A DNA stretch of 64,000 nucleotides from the sequence record OQ722176.1. One strand, written 5' to 3'. This document shows positions 3,205-58,217 of the stretch, one piece after another. The notes beneath the pieces are model-generated. The model was given only the letters and a program-made list of their open reading frames with translations. It was not told where the DNA came from and searched no databases. The position numbers and the translations under genes were made by a program. Each line of letters begins with the position of its first letter. The stretch's first letter is position 1.

Positions 3205-4383
3205 CTAAGCGACGAACGCTACACGCTGTACGATTGTCTGTTTTTCGTCACGAAACTCGCTGTGCTCTTTTACAGTAGCTTTAATCGTAACAGTCTCACC
3301 AGTTTCAATCTTGTCGTTGTCATTGTTGCGTAGACGTTTAGTACCAAACCAGATAATTAGGTTGTTTTGCTCATCACGGAAGCGGTGGATAAATGTGTCA
3401 CCGTAGTAACCTTCAGTCACGATTGTTTTCTCAAGAGTCACAGTGAAGTTTTCACGCTTCTTAACAGTACCGACGTGCTCAGACTCTGGTAGATCAGCTT
3501 TGCGCTCTGCTTCTAGTTTAGCTAGAATCTCACGCTCTTTTGCTTTGTTGTAAGCAACGATGGCTGCTGCTATGAAACCAGTTTGTTTGTATTCAACGAA
3601 CGGTGCAGTGCAAGACGCGATTACATTGTGCATGAAATCGTTAGTTGCTTCTTGATTAGCAACCCACTCTAAGATTTCTTTTGCTTGCTCTTCACACTTG
3701 TCGTAGTTGTATTCAGCAAGCATTGCATCACGCTCTTCGCGCATTTCTTTTGTCTGTGCGTTGATCATGTTCATTACCCACTGACGAGTGATGCCACCGC
3801 CGTGGTATGAACCGTTATGCTCAACATACATAGCAGCCCAAGAAACAATCTGAAGCGCATTGTATACTGGTTTAGAAGAACCACGACCCCATGAATCTTC
3901 TTCACCGAATTCTGAAATTGCGACGTAGAATGTAGCTAGTGAGTCGATTGATTTAGTAGGCAAGTAGTATTTCAGACATGAACCACCCACGCGAATCTCT
4001 TCTTTTGTCTCTTCGTTTTGAATAACGTAAGTCACGTTACGCTGACGATTTGAGTTGCAGTGATCGCATGTAGTATCGCCAAGAAGATGACGGTGATTTG
4101 TTTCGTTGTTTGAACGAACAAGATTTGTTGCGTGATCAAGTTGAGTCAAGAATGACCAACCTTTGTTTGATGGGTATTCACCGCGAATCGTAACGTCAAC
4201 GTAGTATTCACGCTCTTTTTGACCGTTTACTACACGAACTACTGAGTAAACTTCACCGAATTCAGATTCGATTTCAGCAACGTTTAGACGCTTTGCAATT
4301 TTGTTAGTTGATGCAACACGAGCTTCGAACTCGCTCATGAAGATAGAACGGATTGTGTAAGTGTTTTCGAATTGGTTAGTCAT
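3205..4383 (-). CDS. early protein with Zn-binding motif and C-terminal OB-like fold
   Basis: CDHC...GGSC motif; C-terminal HVGTVKKRE..FRDEQNNLIIWF..GETVTIKATVKEH resembles OB folds. Confidence 0.6.
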   Translation of the reverse strand: MTNQFENTYTIRSIFMSEFEARVASTNKIAKRLNVAEIESEFGEVYSVVRVVNGQKEREYYVDVTIRGEYPSNKGWSFLTQLDHATNLVRSNNETNHRHLLGDTTCDHCNSNRQRNVTYVIQNEETKEEIRVGGSCLKYYLPTKSIDSLATFYVAISEFGEEDSWGRGSSKPVYNALQIVSWAAMYVEHNGSYHGGGITRQWVMNMINAQTKEMREERDAMLAEYNYDKCEEQAKEILEWVANQEATNDFMHNVIASCTAPFVEYKQTGFIAAAIVAYNKAKEREILAKLEAERKADLPESEHVGTVKKRENFTVTLEKTIVTEGYYGDTFIHRFRDEQNNLIIWFGTKRLRNNDNDKIETGETVTIKATVKEHSEFRDEKQTIVQRVAFVA

Positions 4384-4422
4384 AATATTCTCTCTCAGTT
4401 AGTCGATGTCGTTTCGATGTAG
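4381..4422 (-). repeat. conserved early-gene leader, copy
   Basis: CTACATCGAAACGACATCGACTAACtgAGAGAGAAtattATG; 25 bp identical to 57906. Confidence 0.9.
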
Positions 4423-4424
4423 AG

Positions 4425-4453
4425 ATAATACGACTTTATGGTGAAAGTGTCAA
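4425..4453 (-). promoter_or_regulatory. sigma70-type early promoter
   Basis: TTGACA-17-TATTAT on minus strand. Confidence 0.9.
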
Positions 4454-4492: not shown

Positions 4493-5473
4493 TTATTTGT
4501 TGAGCGTGAACATAGTTACATCGCCTTGAGTTTCAAACGAAGGCTTGTACCCATGCTTGCTACCATATCGTTGGAATAGACGCTTGTACAATCTAACTCG
4601 CTTCTCATTCCCATCTTTGATTGATGTCGCGATTGTATTACAGTTGTATGTCGTTGCGAATTTAACCGTTTCGTTGACTACTGTAGCGAACACTTGAAGC
4701 GGGTTTTCAGACGCGGTTAAATCATTCGTCCAACTTCCCATGTATCGAACTTGAAAATGCACTTCAACGCCGCCAACTGACTCTGGCGGATTGAAATTGA
4801 ACAACTCGCCATTATCACCCCAATTAATATCGTGCGGTACTAGAATAACACGATATGTTTGTTGACCAATCTGAAATAGACCTTCAACTGGCTTTTTGTC
4901 ACCCTTCGGGTCATCGCCTTTCGGATACATTACTTTAGCAGGCTTGTCCATAGATTCAGAGAACAGACTAGATTCACTCAAGTTTACCGATGTTAGCCAT
5001 TCAGACCACGTCTTTTTATTGCCGATTTTAGCAAATGGGATGTCGTCATGATCTAGCCATTGAGCCGAACGGTCATAAGACTGAGTAGTGTTGAACCCAC
5101 GATAATCATCACCAACCCACAGCCATTTGTGGTGCCAGATCTGATTTACTTGACGTGGCTTAGAAACAGCACCGTCTTTGTAAGTAACCATTAAACCAGC
5201 CGCAGGTTCTTGAACAGTATCAAATTCAACTGAGTCATAGAACGCTACCCCACCTTTCTTGTAGTCAATGCGTACGATATTCGGTGTGAATTGTGGATTA
5301 GCAATAGAAACTTGCGTACGAGCATCAGCAACCATTTGCTTGAACTCGTCTGGTACGTAGTCAACGTGAACATATAATGAACCACCGATGTCTTTACCCA
5401 CGCCCCATTTGCTGCGTTTAATCGCGCTACCTTTGCGAGTTTTCAACGTCGCACGTTCAAAAATCATGTTCAT
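4493..5473 (-). CDS. two-domain late protein; N-domain resembles the accessory domain of phosphorothioation-associated methyltransferases; C-domain shared with ORF 49708
   Basis: GKDIGGSLYVH..NIVR..EFDT..QIWHHKWLWVGDDY..IGNKKTWSEWL; C-domain motif KRVRLYKR. Confidence 0.6.
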   Translation of the reverse strand: MNMIFERATLKTRKGSAIKRSKWGVGKDIGGSLYVHVDYVPDEFKQMVADARTQVSIANPQFTPNIVRIDYKKGGVAFYDSVEFDTVQEPAAGLMVTYKDGAVSKPRQVNQIWHHKWLWVGDDYRGFNTTQSYDRSAQWLDHDDIPFAKIGNKKTWSEWLTSVNLSESSLFSESMDKPAKVMYPKGDDPKGDKKPVEGLFQIGQQTYRVILVPHDINWGDNGELFNFNPPESVGGVEVHFQVRYMGSWTNDLTASENPLQVFATVVNETVKFATTYNCNTIATSIKDGNEKRVRLYKRLFQRYGSKHGYKPSFETQGDVTMFTLNK

Positions 5474-6063
5474 CGTCTTGCCTCGTTGGTAATGTTTCTG
5501 ATCATTCGTACTGCGAATTGAGTATCGCCTGTCATTGCTGCTGAAGCTGCCTTATCGACGTAAAACGTGCTATCTTCAATCATGTTCAGGTGATGATAGA
5601 TTTCGCGAAAATCATGTCGGTCGTACTCGCGATCATTGAATCGTAGTGCACCTGCTTTCTTGTCATCATCGTGAACACGCTTGTACTCATCAACGACGCG
5701 AATCATTTCAGCGGCGTATTTCTTCATTGTCATGTTGTCAAGCTTCAGTCTCTTAGCTGCTGCCATGACTTCTTCACGCGGTCTATCAAGCTCAATCGCA
5801 TCTTTTAGAATGTTCAAGCTGTGAATCGTGTCAACGGCTGACTTTTCCATTCTTAGTTTATGTTCTTCAAGAGAACGATTGTGCTTTTTCAATTCACCCG
5901 AAGCAGTTGCACCAGCAATTAAGCCCGCAAATGTACCCCAGAACCCACCTTTTCGTTGCAGACGTTTTTTAACCTCTCCCTTCGAACCTGCGGTCATTGC
6001 TTGAAATTGCGCCCATCGCCCGCTTTTTTTCGCTTTGTCCATTTCTGTTAAAAATTCAATCAT
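5470..6063 (-). CDS. putative internal head protein
   Basis: MIEFLTE capsid-targeting-like N-terminus; TCTAAATA promoter upstream. Confidence 0.55.
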   Translation of the reverse strand: MIEFLTEMDKAKKSGRWAQFQAMTAGSKGEVKKRLQRKGGFWGTFAGLIAGATASGELKKHNRSLEEHKLRMEKSAVDTIHSLNILKDAIELDRPREEVMAAAKRLKLDNMTMKKYAAEMIRVVDEYKRVHDDDKKAGALRFNDREYDRHDFREIYHHLNMIEDSTFYVDKAASAAMTGDTQFAVRMIRNITNEARR

Positions 6064-10836: not shown

Positions 10837-11246
10837 ACTATGCCACTCTCAATTTTTCTGTTATCAATAATGTGTTTAATTGTGAAGCCCATTTGGCTAA
10901 TGCCTTTTAAAGCCTCTTCGATGAAAGACAACGTATCTTTCATGTGTTGGAAACGAGCAATCGCAACTTGTAGATATTCATCACCTGCAAGTGCGTACTT
11001 CATTTCACTCTTCTCAACGATGAAATCACAAACTTCATCATCGTGTTTGCCGCTATAAAAGAGCCAGCGGTCTTTTCTCACAGCTTCCATTTTCATTTCA
11101 GCTTTAATAAGAAGTTGTCTTGCATCGGCTCGATATGCAAGCCACTTTGCATGAAGAACAGGGATGCGTACGGCTGCTGTTTCTAGTGCAGTCGTATCGA
11201 TCTTAACGTCTTCATGGTATTGTGCTTTTAAATCTTGTAGCTTCAT
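10833..11246 (-). CDS. uvsY: recombination mediator UvsY
   Basis: MKLQDLK..EDVKID..IPVLHAKWL..FTIKHIIDNRKIESG; synteny with uvsW. Confidence 0.93.
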   Translation of the reverse strand: MKLQDLKAQYHEDVKIDTTALETAAVRIPVLHAKWLAYRADARQLLIKAEMKMEAVRKDRWLFYSGKHDDEVCDFIVEKSEMKYALAGDEYLQVAIARFQHMKDTLSFIEEALKGISQMGFTIKHIIDNRKIESGIV

Positions 11247-11266: not shown

Positions 11267-11295
11267 AGTATACATATCATTCGGGTGTCTGTAAA
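11267..11295 (-). promoter_or_regulatory. uvsY promoter (GTTTA class)
   Basis: GTTTACA-17-TATACT. Confidence 0.8.
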
Positions 11296-11299
11296 CAAG

Positions 11300-11370
11300 A
11301 ATCTCACTAATACTTCTAATATCACTAAAAGTACTAATTCTACTAAGATGATGCGGAATTTTTCCGCCTC
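11300..11370 (-). repeat. 71-bp iteron/hairpin cassette, copy 1
   Basis: 62/71 identical to 53904-53974; five TTAG at 9-bp period. Confidence 0.9.
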
Positions 11371-11392
11371 TTACCAGTTTCGCTTCGCATAC

Positions 11393-11416
11393 AAAAAAAA
11401 GCCCCGAAGGGCTTTT
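11393..11416 (-). terminator. terminator after gene 35
   Basis: GCCC-TTCG-GGGC followed by T8 on minus strand. Confidence 0.9.
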
Positions 11417-19214: not shown

Positions 19215-19497
19215 AGACTACGTTCTTAAAGAAGAGCTTGGCGATTTAGTGCCGCCTATCAAAGGCAGCCTTAGACAGCAAATTTCGTTAGAGATTGAAT
19301 CAATCTACAATAGCTGTCCTGCCATGACCTATCTTGAAGCGTGTCTGTTCTTTATCGAGCAATACGATTACGACATCAGTCGATTCCCGTTTCTGATTAA
19401 TCAGACACTGCGAGACAAGATTGAGACTGAGGCGATAAATGAAAAGACTATTAGAAGTCGATTTGGTTCTTCCTCGGACTTGGGTAAATGGATATAG
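19204..19497 (+). CDS. 33: late transcription coactivator gp33
   Basis: TYLEAC..FIE..LRDKIETEAINEKTIR; synteny. Confidence 0.88.
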   Translation: MKSEDYVLKEELGDLVPPIKGSLRQQISLEIESIYNSCPAMTYLEACLFFIEQYDYDISRFPFLINQTLRDKIETEAINEKTIRSRFGSSSDLGKWI

Positions 19498-27402: not shown

Positions 27403-27408
27403 TAACTT

Positions 27409-27447
27409 CATCGAGACGACATCGACTAACTAAGAGAGAAAATTATG
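27409..27447 (+). repeat. conserved early-gene leader, copy
   Basis: CATCGAGACGACATCGACTAACTAAGAGAGAAAATTATG. Confidence 0.88.
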
Positions 27448-38414: not shown

Positions 38415-39175
38415 TGCGTATTGTTGTCGGGTCAACTGCGTTGCATCATCATGGGATTCACCTGCGTAAGACCATTAAAGATCTAGATGTATTCGTAGAC
38501 TCACCCGACTCGGCTAACGACGGGGATGATTTCATCGTCATTCCCGTTCACATTTTGAAGATGTTCGACGGTGATATAGCAACTGCTGACGAAATCTATA
38601 CGATTAAGTGCAGTCATCTTGGTTGGGATGAGCATAAAGTCGGGTATAGTCAGTTTGGTGGTTCGACATTGTGGGACAAGCATAAGCGTGATGTTATTGC
38701 GCTGTCGCGATTCTGCAAAATCAAGCCTGAGCTATACGCAGCGTTAACAAATCACTGGCGAAAAGAGCTTGGCAATAAAGACTATCTGTGTTTGAACAAA
38801 GATGCAGACGATTTCTTTAATGACAAGGTTCGATACGTGTACAATCACGATGAACTACATCGAATGGTTGCTGCACCAAATCGCCCGTTGTATGAGAAAA
38901 TTCTCAAAGACGATTGTGATGTGTTAGTCAGTAAAGAGAAGTTCGAACAGTTGTCATTCGAAGACAAAATCAATCTGTTCCACGAAGAAATTACGGTTAT
39001 TGCTATTGAGCGTTACATCGTTCATGGTATGATGCCGCTTAATGCGTGGAATCATGCGTTGAAGAAGACAATTACACGGCTTACCAAGAATTGGGCATGT
39101 GATTTCATTTGTGCAAACATGAGTCATTACATGAAGCCGAAATATAATTTGAATATTCTTGAAGAAAAGGGTTGA
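38414..39175 (+). CDS. putative Pol-beta-type nucleotidyltransferase
   Basis: N-terminal GSTAL..KDLDV (GS..DxD) motif. Confidence 0.5.
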   Translation: MRIVVGSTALHHHGIHLRKTIKDLDVFVDSPDSANDGDDFIVIPVHILKMFDGDIATADEIYTIKCSHLGWDEHKVGYSQFGGSTLWDKHKRDVIALSRFCKIKPELYAALTNHWRKELGNKDYLCLNKDADDFFNDKVRYVYNHDELHRMVAAPNRPLYEKILKDDCDVLVSKEKFEQLSFEDKINLFHEEITVIAIERYIVHGMMPLNAWNHALKKTITRLTKNWACDFICANMSHYMKPKYNLNILEEKG

Positions 39176-39201
39176 CTTCGGTCAGCCCTTTCGCGTATTA
39201 T
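39165..39201 (+). promoter_or_regulatory. fused terminator/early promoter module
   Basis: AAGGGTTGAC-TTCG-GTCAGCCCTTT hairpin containing TTGACT, 18 bp to TATTAT. Confidence 0.8.
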
Positions 39202-39203
39202 AG

Positions 39204-39247
39204 CTACATCAACACGACGTTGACCAAAACAAAGAGAGAACATTATG
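39204..39247 (+). repeat. conserved early-gene leader, diverged copy
   Basis: CTACATCAACACGACGTTGACCAAAACAAAGAGAGAACATTATG. Confidence 0.75.
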
Positions 39248-47158: not shown

Positions 47159-47197
47159 AAAAAAGGGTTGACACACGTCAGCCCTTTTTAGTATCAT
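47159..47197 (+). promoter_or_regulatory. fused terminator/early promoter module
   Basis: AAAAGGGTTGAC-acac-GTCAGCCCTTTTT containing TTGACA, 18 bp to TATCAT. Confidence 0.8.
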
Positions 47198-47225
47198 ACA
47201 GTAGTTATTACATGAGAGAAACATT

Positions 47226-52305: not shown

Positions 52306-52355
52306 ATGCTCATAACACCCGTTGAAATTATTTTAAACTTTTTTGAACAAAATGG

Positions 52356-52385
52356 TTGCGTGTTGGCTAAAACATCGCCTAATAT
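52356..52385 (+). promoter_or_regulatory. early promoter
   Basis: TTGCGT-18-TAATAT. Confidence 0.7.
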
Positions 52386-52387
52386 AG

Positions 52388-52430
52388 CTACATCGAAACG
52401 ACTTCTACTAACAAAGAGAGAACAATTATG
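52388..52430 (+). repeat. conserved early-gene leader, copy
   Basis: CTACATCGAAACGACTTCTACTAACAAAGAGAGAACAATTATG. Confidence 0.88.
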
Positions 52431-53865: not shown

Positions 53866-53877
53866 TTCTCTCAATCA

Positions 53878-53897
53878 GCCCCGAAAGGGGCTTTTTT
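53878..53897 (+). terminator. terminator
   Basis: GCCCC-gaaa-GGGGCTTTTTT. Confidence 0.9.
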
Positions 53898-53903
53898 AGG
53901 TTT

Positions 53904-53974
53904 GAGGTGGAAAAATTCCGTCTCATCTTAGTAGAATTAGTAGTTTTAGTAATATTAGAGTTATTAGTAAAATT
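53904..53974 (+). repeat. 71-bp iteron/hairpin cassette, copy 2
   Basis: 62/71 identical to reverse complement of 11300-11370. Confidence 0.9.
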
Positions 53975-54004
53975 GTTTAAGAACCGCCTTGATAGCCGTA
54001 TAAT
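53975..54004 (+). promoter_or_regulatory. GTTTA-class promoter
   Basis: GTTTAAG-17-TATAAT. Confidence 0.8.
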
Positions 54005-54022: not shown

Positions 54023-54262
54023 ATGATAACGATATACACAATTCCTAACTGTGACGGCTGTCGTCACGCTATCTCCCTCTGTAAGTTCAAAAACGTCCCG
54101 TATACTGTAATCGAGTTGCAGTCTCAATCTGACATCGACGAATTGCATAGAAAGCTTGGTGGTGTTCGTAATATTCGAGTTCCGCTTGCCATGCACGGTG
54201 ATACATACATTGGTCACCTGCCTGAATTAAAGCGATTTGTTGATAACCAGACGTATAAATAA
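54023..54262 (+). CDS. glutaredoxin
   Basis: YTIPNCDGC, VP, YIG. Confidence 0.88.
   Translation: MITIYTIPNCDGCRHAISLCKFKNVPYTVIELQSQSDIDELHRKLGGVRNIRVPLAMHGDTYIGHLPELKRFVDNQTYK
54254..54261 (+). promoter_or_regulatory. T4-type late promoter
   Basis: TATAAATA upstream of gene 24. Confidence 0.85.
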
Positions 54263-57202: not shown

Positions 57203-57850
57203 ATGAAAAAGTTCTGCAATTTTCTATCTGAAGTTCAGAAATACAGTTCAGCGGCTACGTCGATTCGTGGTAAAGAAGTTGCAGCGTTAGTTAAGTTGTT
57301 CAAGTCAGGCATGTTCACGCCTGGCGGAACAGCACTTGATTACGGCGCTGGCAAATACGGTCGTAACGCTGACTTCTTACGTAGCGAAGGTATCAAAACG
57401 TATGCATACGACAAATTCAATGGTACATCGGCAGATGGGTGGGAAGCTGTTAGCTTGACTATTCCAAATGGTGAGACTTTCGATACTGGCTTCACGTCAT
57501 ACGTATTGAACGTTGTACCTGAAGAAGTCGAAGCTGAGATCATCCGTGACGTTGAATCTCGTACACGTGGTAAAGTGTTCCACATTACTCGCGGCACTGA
57601 CATCACACAGACAGTTTTCAACGTGATTTCTGGTAAGTCTAAAAATGACGTAATGATGCAATTCATTGCTCAAGAATATCCAGAGATTCATGGTCAGATT
57701 GTCGCAGGTGGCGGCACTAAAGAACTTGCGAAAGAAATTTCCGAGCGCGGTGTGGTTACAGCTAAAGACAGTTTTCAACGTATCCCAGACTTGTCAAAGT
57801 ACGGTTACAAGAAATCTGGTTCAGGTGCTTCTGTAGTCTGGACAAAATAA
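57203..57850 (+). CDS. class I SAM-dependent methyltransferase with capsid-targeting-like N-terminus
   Basis: ATSIR..LDYGAGKYG..YAYDKF..FDTGFTSYVLNVV; MKKFCNFLSE. Confidence 0.85.
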   Translation: MKKFCNFLSEVQKYSSAATSIRGKEVAALVKLFKSGMFTPGGTALDYGAGKYGRNADFLRSEGIKTYAYDKFNGTSADGWEAVSLTIPNGETFDTGFTSYVLNVVPEEVEAEIIRDVESRTRGKVFHITRGTDITQTVFNVISGKSKNDVMMQFIAQEYPEIHGQIVAGGGTKELAKEISERGVVTAKDSFQRIPDLSKYGYKKSGSGASVVWTK

Positions 57851-57867
57851 TTTCGATTATTTTAAAG

Positions 57868-57903
57868 AAAAGGGTTGCTTCGGCAGCCCTTTTTGCGTAT
57901 TAT
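57868..57903 (+). promoter_or_regulatory. fused terminator/early promoter module
   Basis: AAAAGGGTTGC-TTCG-GCAGCCCTTTTT containing TTGCTT-17-TATTAT. Confidence 0.8.
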
Positions 57904-57905
57904 AG

Positions 57906-57947
57906 CTACATCGAAACGACATCGACTAACAAAGAGAGAACATTATG
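57906..57947 (+). repeat. conserved early-gene leader, copy
   Basis: CTACATCGAAACGACATCGACTAACAAAGAGAGAACATTATG. Confidence 0.9.
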
Positions 57948-58217
57948 ATGATTACTGAATCAATTCGCTTTACTACTGTACGTGATATGCTAGACTGCCC
58001 AGCTACGTCTTTCGCTTTCTGGTCAAACGAGTTCATGATCTTCCCAGACGAAGACTTGACTATCAAATCGTACGATGAAGATAAAGTGACTTTTATGCTT
58101 GATCCGATGTGTTTAGCGACTGTATCACTTGATGATACGCTAGAAACACTTGAAGCGAAATTCTCTGCTGCTCTTTCTGTAAGCGTTGCTCAGATCAAAC
58201 AGAAACATAATATGTAA
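57945..58217 (+). CDS. hypothetical early protein
   Basis: 90-aa ORF behind leader. Confidence 0.8.
   Translation: MMITESIRFTTVRDMLDCPATSFAFWSNEFMIFPDEDLTIKSYDEDKVTFMLDPMCLATVSLDDTLETLEAKFSAALSVSVAQIKQKHNM

Follow-up and report, generated by a model that had tools for sequence, protein, structure and literature searches.

A stem-loop and TTAG-repeat cassette at six sites in KVP40-like vibriophage genomes suggests action on one unwound DNA strand

Iterons, like the repressor and centromere arrays of ribbon-helix-helix proteins, consist of short invariant cores that are arranged head to tail at a fixed period and bound cooperatively. Ribbon-helix-helix-type proteins, for example, read 4-bp boxes at a spacing of 7-9 bp. 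At the RNA level, the translational operator of T4 gene 32 pairs a structured 5' element with a repeated, weakly structured A/U-rich motif extending as far as the ribosome-binding site, and its binding is cooperative and nucleates at the structure. The published preference of RNase E is R-N-W-U-U. Large vibriophages of the KVP40 genus are used in aquaculture phage therapy.

The replication origins and genome-wide cis-elements of T4-like phages have been poorly defined so far. T4 has five or more origins, which share no common motif (Kreuzer and Brister 2010, PMC3016281). At these origins, the exposed non-template strand serves helicase loading, and oriE has been described as containing direct repeats at even intervals together with an early promoter (PMC3016281). 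T4-like phages, including nt-1 and KVP40, also carry PeSL (promoter-early stem-loop) cassettes (Comeau et al. 2014, PMC4122927).

The cassette and its six-copy family

The window, a stretch of 64,000 nucleotides, corresponds at 100% identity to bases 62001-126000 of Vibrio phage vB_VspM_VS2 (OQ722176.1). VS2 is a Schizotequatrovirus, a KVP40-like T4-type vibriophage with a 250-kb genome. Gene names were borrowed from the collinear KVP40 record because the VS2 GenBank record is unannotated. Two copies of the cassette are present in the window (Table 1). Copy 1 has the tail-fibre gene 35 upstream and uvsY (start codon at 11246) downstream; copy 2 has an SprT-like gene upstream and nrdH/gene 24 (start codon at 54023) downstream.

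The two window copies are inverted relatives with the same architecture. Positions 53904-53974 are identical to the reverse complement of 11300-11370 at 62 of 71 positions, as the preliminary description had claimed, and a repeat finder returned inverted arms of 79 nt (11297-11375 and 53899-53977) that are 85% complementary. The common layout that it had reported was also recovered: along the flanking genes, each copy runs from a terminator through a stem-loop, the linker ATC, five 9-bp TTAG units, and a T4-type early promoter to a Shine-Dalgarno sequence and ATG. Both stem-loops share the form GAGGYGGAA-AAA-TTCCGYMTC, and the promoters read TTTAAG or TTTACA, N17, and TATAAT or TATACT. A periodic pattern of four TTAG boxes, allowing up to two mismatches, was matched six times in the window against 0.04 matches expected by chance. 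All five TTAG cores are the same in both copies, in agreement with the earlier reading, and four of the five spacers differ.

Some details of that reading needed revision. The stem of copy 2 does pair fully on the sense strand with two G-T wobbles, but the stem of copy 1, which had been taken as fully Watson-Crick, has a G-A mismatch at its third pair. The -35 element had been placed in a sixth 9-bp register; this holds for copy 2, where it abuts the array, but not for copy 1, where it is shifted by 3 nt. The terminator upstream of copy 2 is context and lies outside the cassette core. An additional upstream module is found in approximately 29 of 48 copies and is absent from copy 2.

Table 1. 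Features of the two cassettes, in positions of the window
Feature	Position	Strand	Sequence and basis
Copy 2, upstream intrinsic terminator of SprT-like gene	53877..53898	+	AGCCCCGAAAGGGGCT plus T-run; stem 53877-53892; terminator scan
Copy 2, stem-loop	53904..53924	+	GAGGTGGAA-AAA-TTCCGTCTC; 9 pairs including two G-T wobbles
Copy 2, ATC linker and five 9-nt units	53925..53972	+	TTAGTAGAA TTAGTAGTT TTAGTAATA TTAGAGTTA TTAGTAAAA; units proper 53928-53972
nrdH T4-type early promoter	53976..54004	+	TTTAAG-N17-TATAAT; sequence, consensus from PMC4122927
Copy 1, upstream intrinsic terminator of gene 35 (long tail fibre)	11392..11415	-	sequence, fold
Copy 1, upstream module	11381..11388	-	GCGAAGCG; consensus AGCG-N1-2-AGCG
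Copy 1, stem-loop	11350..11370	-	GAGGCGGAA-AAA-TTCCGCATC; one G-A mismatch
Copy 1, ATC linker and five 9-nt TTAG units	11302..11349	-	units 11346-11302
uvsY early promoter	11267..11295	-	TTTACA-N17-TATACT; sequence, KVP40 annotation

The inverted pair belongs to a larger family. The preliminary description had recognized a second, inverted copy, which is real; it nevertheless understated the family, since the VS2 record contains six cassettes, at 19317(-), 45268(+), 73346(-), 115928(+), 159386(+), and 212202(+). BLAST located six places per record in most KVP40-like phage genomes among the matches listed. By pattern searches and fetched regions, six cassettes each were found in VS2, KVP40, nt-1, ValKK3, 6E35.1a, and D527, five in F86, and seven, including two in tandem, in 1.081.O. 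Cassettes comprise five to seven TTAG boxes at a 9-base period, and every copy is co-oriented with its flanking genes. The loci are conserved across the eight genomes examined: gene 3/gene 1, gene 12/wac, gene 35/uvsY (copy 1), SprT-like/nrdH (copy 2), one position 5' of a DNA methyltransferase cluster, and another directly 5' of a lipoprotein gene.

Outside this group, the cassette was not detected. The specific cassette pattern was found among IMG/VR viral contigs in KVP40 and VH7D records only, and a general TTAG-N5 scan of viral contigs returned only unrelated tandem and coding repeats. None of 185,579 prokaryote species genomes contained the cassette pattern; 13 chance three-unit matches were without the stem-loop. 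Among other T4-like genera, the next relatives have <40% UvsY identity. Literature searches returned no description of the cassette, although Miller et al. (2003), who published the KVP40 genome, may mention it. In the excerpted text of the PeSL paper on nt-1 and KVP40 (PMC4122927), the flanking terminator-promoter motif is described and the cassette module is not.

Local variation was seen at several copies. In 1.081.O, two complete tandem cassettes lie 164 bp apart at 206824-207638, at the locus assigned to gene 3/gene 1; this pair is the sole copy-number gain seen. In VS2, an extra 102-aa ORF (159042-159350) separates the KVP40.0135 homologue from the cassette. The ORF is also found in nt-1 and has no counterpart in KVP40, which indicates an indel right at the cassette edge. 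The nrdH copy of D527 has two TTAG-to-TTCG changes (308-409 of the fetched D527 region). The D527 record also annotates a 33-codon “hypothetical protein”, VPHD527_0095, over this cassette, which is probably a false gene call.

A coding reading of the cassette was rejected. A single frame stays open along the array, yet no start is conserved; in-frame stops occur in the upstream linker, and the frame differs between copies.

Conservation, strand, and genomic setting

Purifying selection on an array that probably binds a factor, joined to a sense-strand stem-loop, is well supported by sequence comparison. Among 251 units from 43 non-identical copies, the TTAG letters are unchanged in 1000 of 1004 instances: T1 and T2 are invariant, A3 is retained in 249 of 251 units, and G4 in 250 of 251. 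The period is exactly 9, and no unit (0/251) has an indel or is out of register. At unit position 5 there is T, A, or G, never C, and position 6 is a purine in 243 of 251 units, while positions 7-9 hold only 0.4-0.8 bits. Spacers contain 282 G versus 25 C, and their position-specific consensus is strongest beside the stem-loop and weakens toward the far end. The difference between near-constant cores and variable spacer positions bears out the selection on the repeats that had been proposed. Neutral duplication, under which cores and spacers would be equally diverged, clearly fails as an account.

The sense arrays fold below their shuffles (mean -8.05 versus -4.5 kcal/mol), and antisense arrays barely fold. 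A fold-back hairpin of the array, with UUAG pairing with itself through wobbles, was rejected, as 79.8% of cells are paired, the same as in shuffles, and one slid register does better. Rfam covariance models gave no match (best E ~1-10, with scores far under the gathering scores). No DnaA box (TTATCCACA, up to one mismatch) was found at any VS2 or KVP40 copy from 150 nt before the first unit to 100 nt after the last. The DnaA-trio unwinding system was rejected because there are no DnaA boxes near the arrays of these copies.

The stem-loop is the sole helix predicted by RNAalifold in a 44-copy alignment. Across its nine stem pairs, 87% of cells are paired, compared with 84.0 +/- 0.6 for shuffles and 38-54% when the register is slid. 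GC->CG flips at two stem pairs (GCGGAA/TTCCGC -> GCCCAA/TTGGGC) occur in four copies, from at least two loci. The loop sequence is variable (AAA, TTA, or A7), and the distance from the stem-loop to the first TTAG box is fixed at exactly 3 nt. Stem wobbles comprise 32 G-U or U-G cells versus 2 A-C cells. Since G-U cells are mismatches on the opposite strand, the stem belongs to the sense strand. Pairing kept through two-sided changes, together with this excess of G-U, agrees with the earlier proposal of selection on a single-stranded structure. The structure is thus predicted to form on the sense strand, as RNA or as single-stranded DNA.

The cassettes in each genome evolve in concert, through gene conversion, co-evolution with a factor, or both. 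Over the stem-loop and five units, identity is 84.5% between paralogues within a genome, 83.0% between orthologues of different genomes, and 81.3% between non-orthologues. For distant genome pairs, orthologous cassettes are no closer than non-orthologous ones. Furthermore, lineage-specific spacer variants, such as TTAGTGATT TTAGTGTTC in 1.081.O, are common to every paralogue in the genome concerned. Sequence exchange between copies, as by gene conversion, does seem to occur.

Inversion of the 42 kb between the two window copies, which had been suggested, was not seen: copy order, orientation, and spacing are alike in the eight genomes examined. No inversion joints were found in public-run assembly contigs, which, being contigs only, are silent on rare isomers. 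These contigs stop inside the cassette, and their loose ends read into other paralogues. The six cassettes likely fragment short-read assemblies of KVP40-like phages, and the module explains why such assemblies break at six places. De Bruijn contigs of related phages from three public runs all end inside the cassette (window 53905-53975).

When the 54-bp duplex windows of the VS2 genome are ranked from the least stable, the six arrays come at percentiles 0.00-0.54, a level of instability that other AT-rich intergenic stretches equal. Four arrays rank 1, 5, 7, and 15 by instability among distinct loci, and the nrdH array (copy 2) ties for the least stable 54-bp window genome-wide. The gaps between the six sites are 26, 28, 43, 43, 53, and 58 kb. 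Compared with six random points on a circle, this evenness has P = 0.008 for the minimum gap and P = 0.005 for the variance, calculated on one set of six collinear sites.

The copies occupy varied positions in transcription units. Four of the six have a strong intrinsic terminator upstream and an early promoter downstream. The copy at the methyltransferase locus lies between a stop codon and a terminator, in the 3' UTR (VS2, KVP40, and nt-1). The lipoprotein copy takes up the space separating two cistrons: the gene upstream of it stops within the AGCGAAGCG module, the last units provide GGAG (Shine-Dalgarno) and ATG, and there is no promoter. At five of the six loci, an early promoter (TTTAVN-N17-TAWWAT) lies 3' of the array, with 3 to ~30 bp between array and -35; at uvsY and nrdH the -35 abuts the last unit. 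Genes adjoining the cassettes gave no informative domain, with only SprT-like, weak MmcB-like (below the Pfam cutoff), and lipoprotein signal matches. No gene for an initiator or binding protein was found among these neighbours. A look through RNA sequencing runs turned up none that contains this phage.

A second repeat family is present in the window at 4380-4432(-), 27403-27447, 39141-39245, 47161-47198, 52325-52429, and 57844-57948. Its copies, up to 91% alike and on both strands, comprise a PeSL-type stem-loop AAAAGGGTTGAC...GTCAGCCCTTT, a TATTATA -10, and a 45-nt leader TAGCTACATCGAAACGACATCGACTAAC..AGAGAGAAC..ATG. Conservation of the leader suggests that the copies have a 5' UTR signal in common.

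Candidate function and rival readings

We tentatively regard the cassette as a strand-specific assembly site for a factor on unwound DNA, and as a candidate replication start or helicase-loading site, a reading that is possible but short of probable. The very AT-rich, TA-step-rich array would melt readily, and the conserved stem-loop on the exposed sense strand would create a duplex/single-strand junction. From the stem-loop onward, a putative sequence-specific factor with a 9-nt footprint would bind the five to seven TTAG boxes head to tail. The six evenly spaced, gene-co-oriented sites could then let the replication machinery enter in a set direction, through helicase or primosome loading. 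Such entry points might be origins or single-strand initiation signals, the KVP40-group counterpart of the multiple origins of T4. Our inferences are that the cassette acts as single-stranded DNA and not as RNA, that it is bound by protein, and that it serves replication. It is rather unlikely, though conceivable, that the cassette is a sequence-defined origin module in six copies, whose stem-loop and TTAG iterons melt and load the replisome co-directionally with transcription via a clade-specific single-strand-binding initiator.

The positions of the copies favour a DNA-level site: the uvsY copy immediately precedes the uvsY promoter, the position of oriF in T4, and several copies are in late-gene regions beside early promoters, like T4 origins (PMC3016281). 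However, an initiator or binding factor was not identified among the neighbouring genes, the early promoters are downstream of the array and read away from it, other AT-rich spacers are equally unstable, and the spacing statistic comes from a single set of six collinear sites. Gene co-orientation and G-U pairing suit RNA equally, and the last units of the lipoprotein copy, which form a Shine-Dalgarno sequence and start codon, resemble a translational operator. As an RNA element, the stem-loop would nucleate a cooperative RNA-binding protein on UUAG units that controls translation, processing, or stability of neighbouring cistrons, or the array would be an RNase E-type cleavage cluster by a protective hairpin. 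In line with this, all copies are sense-oriented, stem pairing leans on G-U, two of the six loci (the lipoprotein and methyltransferase-locus copies) are certainly transcribed, sense arrays fold more stably than shuffles and antisense arrays hardly do, and unit positions 7-9 plus UU would agree with the RNase E preference. We nonetheless consider an RNA element unlikely. At four of the six loci, a canonical strong intrinsic terminator stands directly upstream and the next promoter downstream, so that the cassette would be transcribed by read-through only. Moreover, the adjoining genes have no common theme, the array fold-back is without covariation support, Rfam gave no match, and both the even spacing and the low duplex stability are left unexplained.

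Two further explanations draw on other features of the cassette. A phage or host protein, for example of the ribbon-helix-helix type, might polymerise on the TTAG units of double-stranded DNA, switching the adjacent early promoters on or off or organising the chromosome. The early promoter that follows the array at five of six loci, with its -35 abutting the last unit at uvsY and nrdH, would fit such a regulator, as would the strict period and invariant 4-bp core, which are like those of known repressor and centromere arrays. Even so, it is distinctly unlikely: the distance from array to -35 varies from 3 to ~30 bp, the lipoprotein copy is promoterless, the 9-bp period sets successive sites on different faces of B-DNA, and the stem-loop, 3 nt from the first box, covaries as a folded single strand and breaks duplex palindromy. 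It is very unlikely that the cassette is a functionless recombination or mobility module, that is, a variant of the gene-shuffling PeSL terminator/promoter cassettes whose copies are alike by gene conversion only. The cassette does lie inside junctions of the PeSL terminator-promoter type (PMC4122927), and the indel by the methyltransferase-locus copy (the 102-aa ORF in VS2 and nt-1 versus KVP40), the tandem duplication in 1.081.O, and the concerted evolution of copies are all consistent with recombination. Yet there are just six copies, at fixed positions, in clade genomes that have diverged to 73-87% DNA identity, and compensatory stem changes indicate purifying selection. The near-absolute conservation of TTAG, with no out-of-register unit, likewise needs purifying selection, as conversion alone would be insufficient.

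The varied transcription-unit placement of the six copies is easier to reconcile with a DNA site than with an RNA site, and their even spacing would go unexplained if the role were one of purely local gene regulation. A site on unwound DNA is the only one of these readings that covers jointly the stem asymmetry, easy melting, even spacing, indifference to transcription units, and late-region placement beside early promoters, and we favour it provisionally, at less than even confidence. If true, a six-copy origin module would give T4-like phages their first shared origin motif, because the T4 origins have none in common, and it would open KVP40-type replication to study. If the cassette is instead an RNA or duplex regulator site, it would reveal a new factor with a 9-nt footprint. 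One compact module at six spread sites is a directly testable handle on KVP40-group phages.

Comparison with known systems

The cassette resembles the T4 gene 32 operator in combining a structured 5' element with a repeated, weakly structured motif. However, only the lipoprotein copy reaches a ribosome-binding site, and four of the six copies lie behind terminators; at five of the six loci a promoter stands between array and gene, the lipoprotein copy being the exception. The motif and period are also unlike those of the operator. The cassette shares fixed-period tandem direct repeats (5-7 units, exact 9-nt period) with iteron origins, and it has an easily unwound AT-rich element, although other intergenic loci are similar in this respect. 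Unlike iteron and ribbon-helix-helix arrays, it has an obligatory adjacent single-strand stem-loop and a strand-asymmetric composition, and the gene for a cognate protein was not found among the neighbouring genes.

The cassette and the PeSLs (PMC4122927) are both multi-copy intergenic modules at gene boundaries with indels nearby. The cassette flanks are PeSL parts, namely an A3-4G3-loop-C3T3-4 terminator and an N17 early promoter. A terminator-like stem-loop followed by an early promoter is found in the flanks at four of the six loci, with the TTAG module inserted between them. Neither a second stem-loop nor a 9-bp TTAG array is named for PeSLs in the excerpted text of that paper. Furthermore, PeSLs are presented there as numerous and clustered in hyperplastic regions, with many copies differing between close relatives, whereas the cassette occupies six fixed, evenly spread positions that are conserved in the eight genomes.

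Like T4 oriF(uvsY), oriG(34), and oriE, the cassettes are several per genome, a number of them in late-gene regions and one at uvsY, and they combine a putative AT-rich unwinding element with an adjacent promoter (PMC3016281). T4 origins are without a common sequence, in contrast to the strictly conserved cassettes of the KVP40 group. At oriF and oriG, the promoter reads into the unwinding element, whereas the promoters at the cassettes follow the array and are directed away from it, with terminators on its 5' side; thus, the R-loop scheme of oriF and oriG does not apply. The oriE repeats (NC_000866, ~79.4 kb; 5403-5570 of the fetched region) have a 24-nt period inside gene 5 that coincides with an 8-residue repeat of the gene 5 protein, and may reflect the coding sequence instead of being iterons proper. 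Since their period is that of gene 5 coding, they serve only weakly as a precedent for the cassette. Set beside these systems, the sequence of the cassette suggests action on a single unwound strand, perhaps at points where DNA copying begins.
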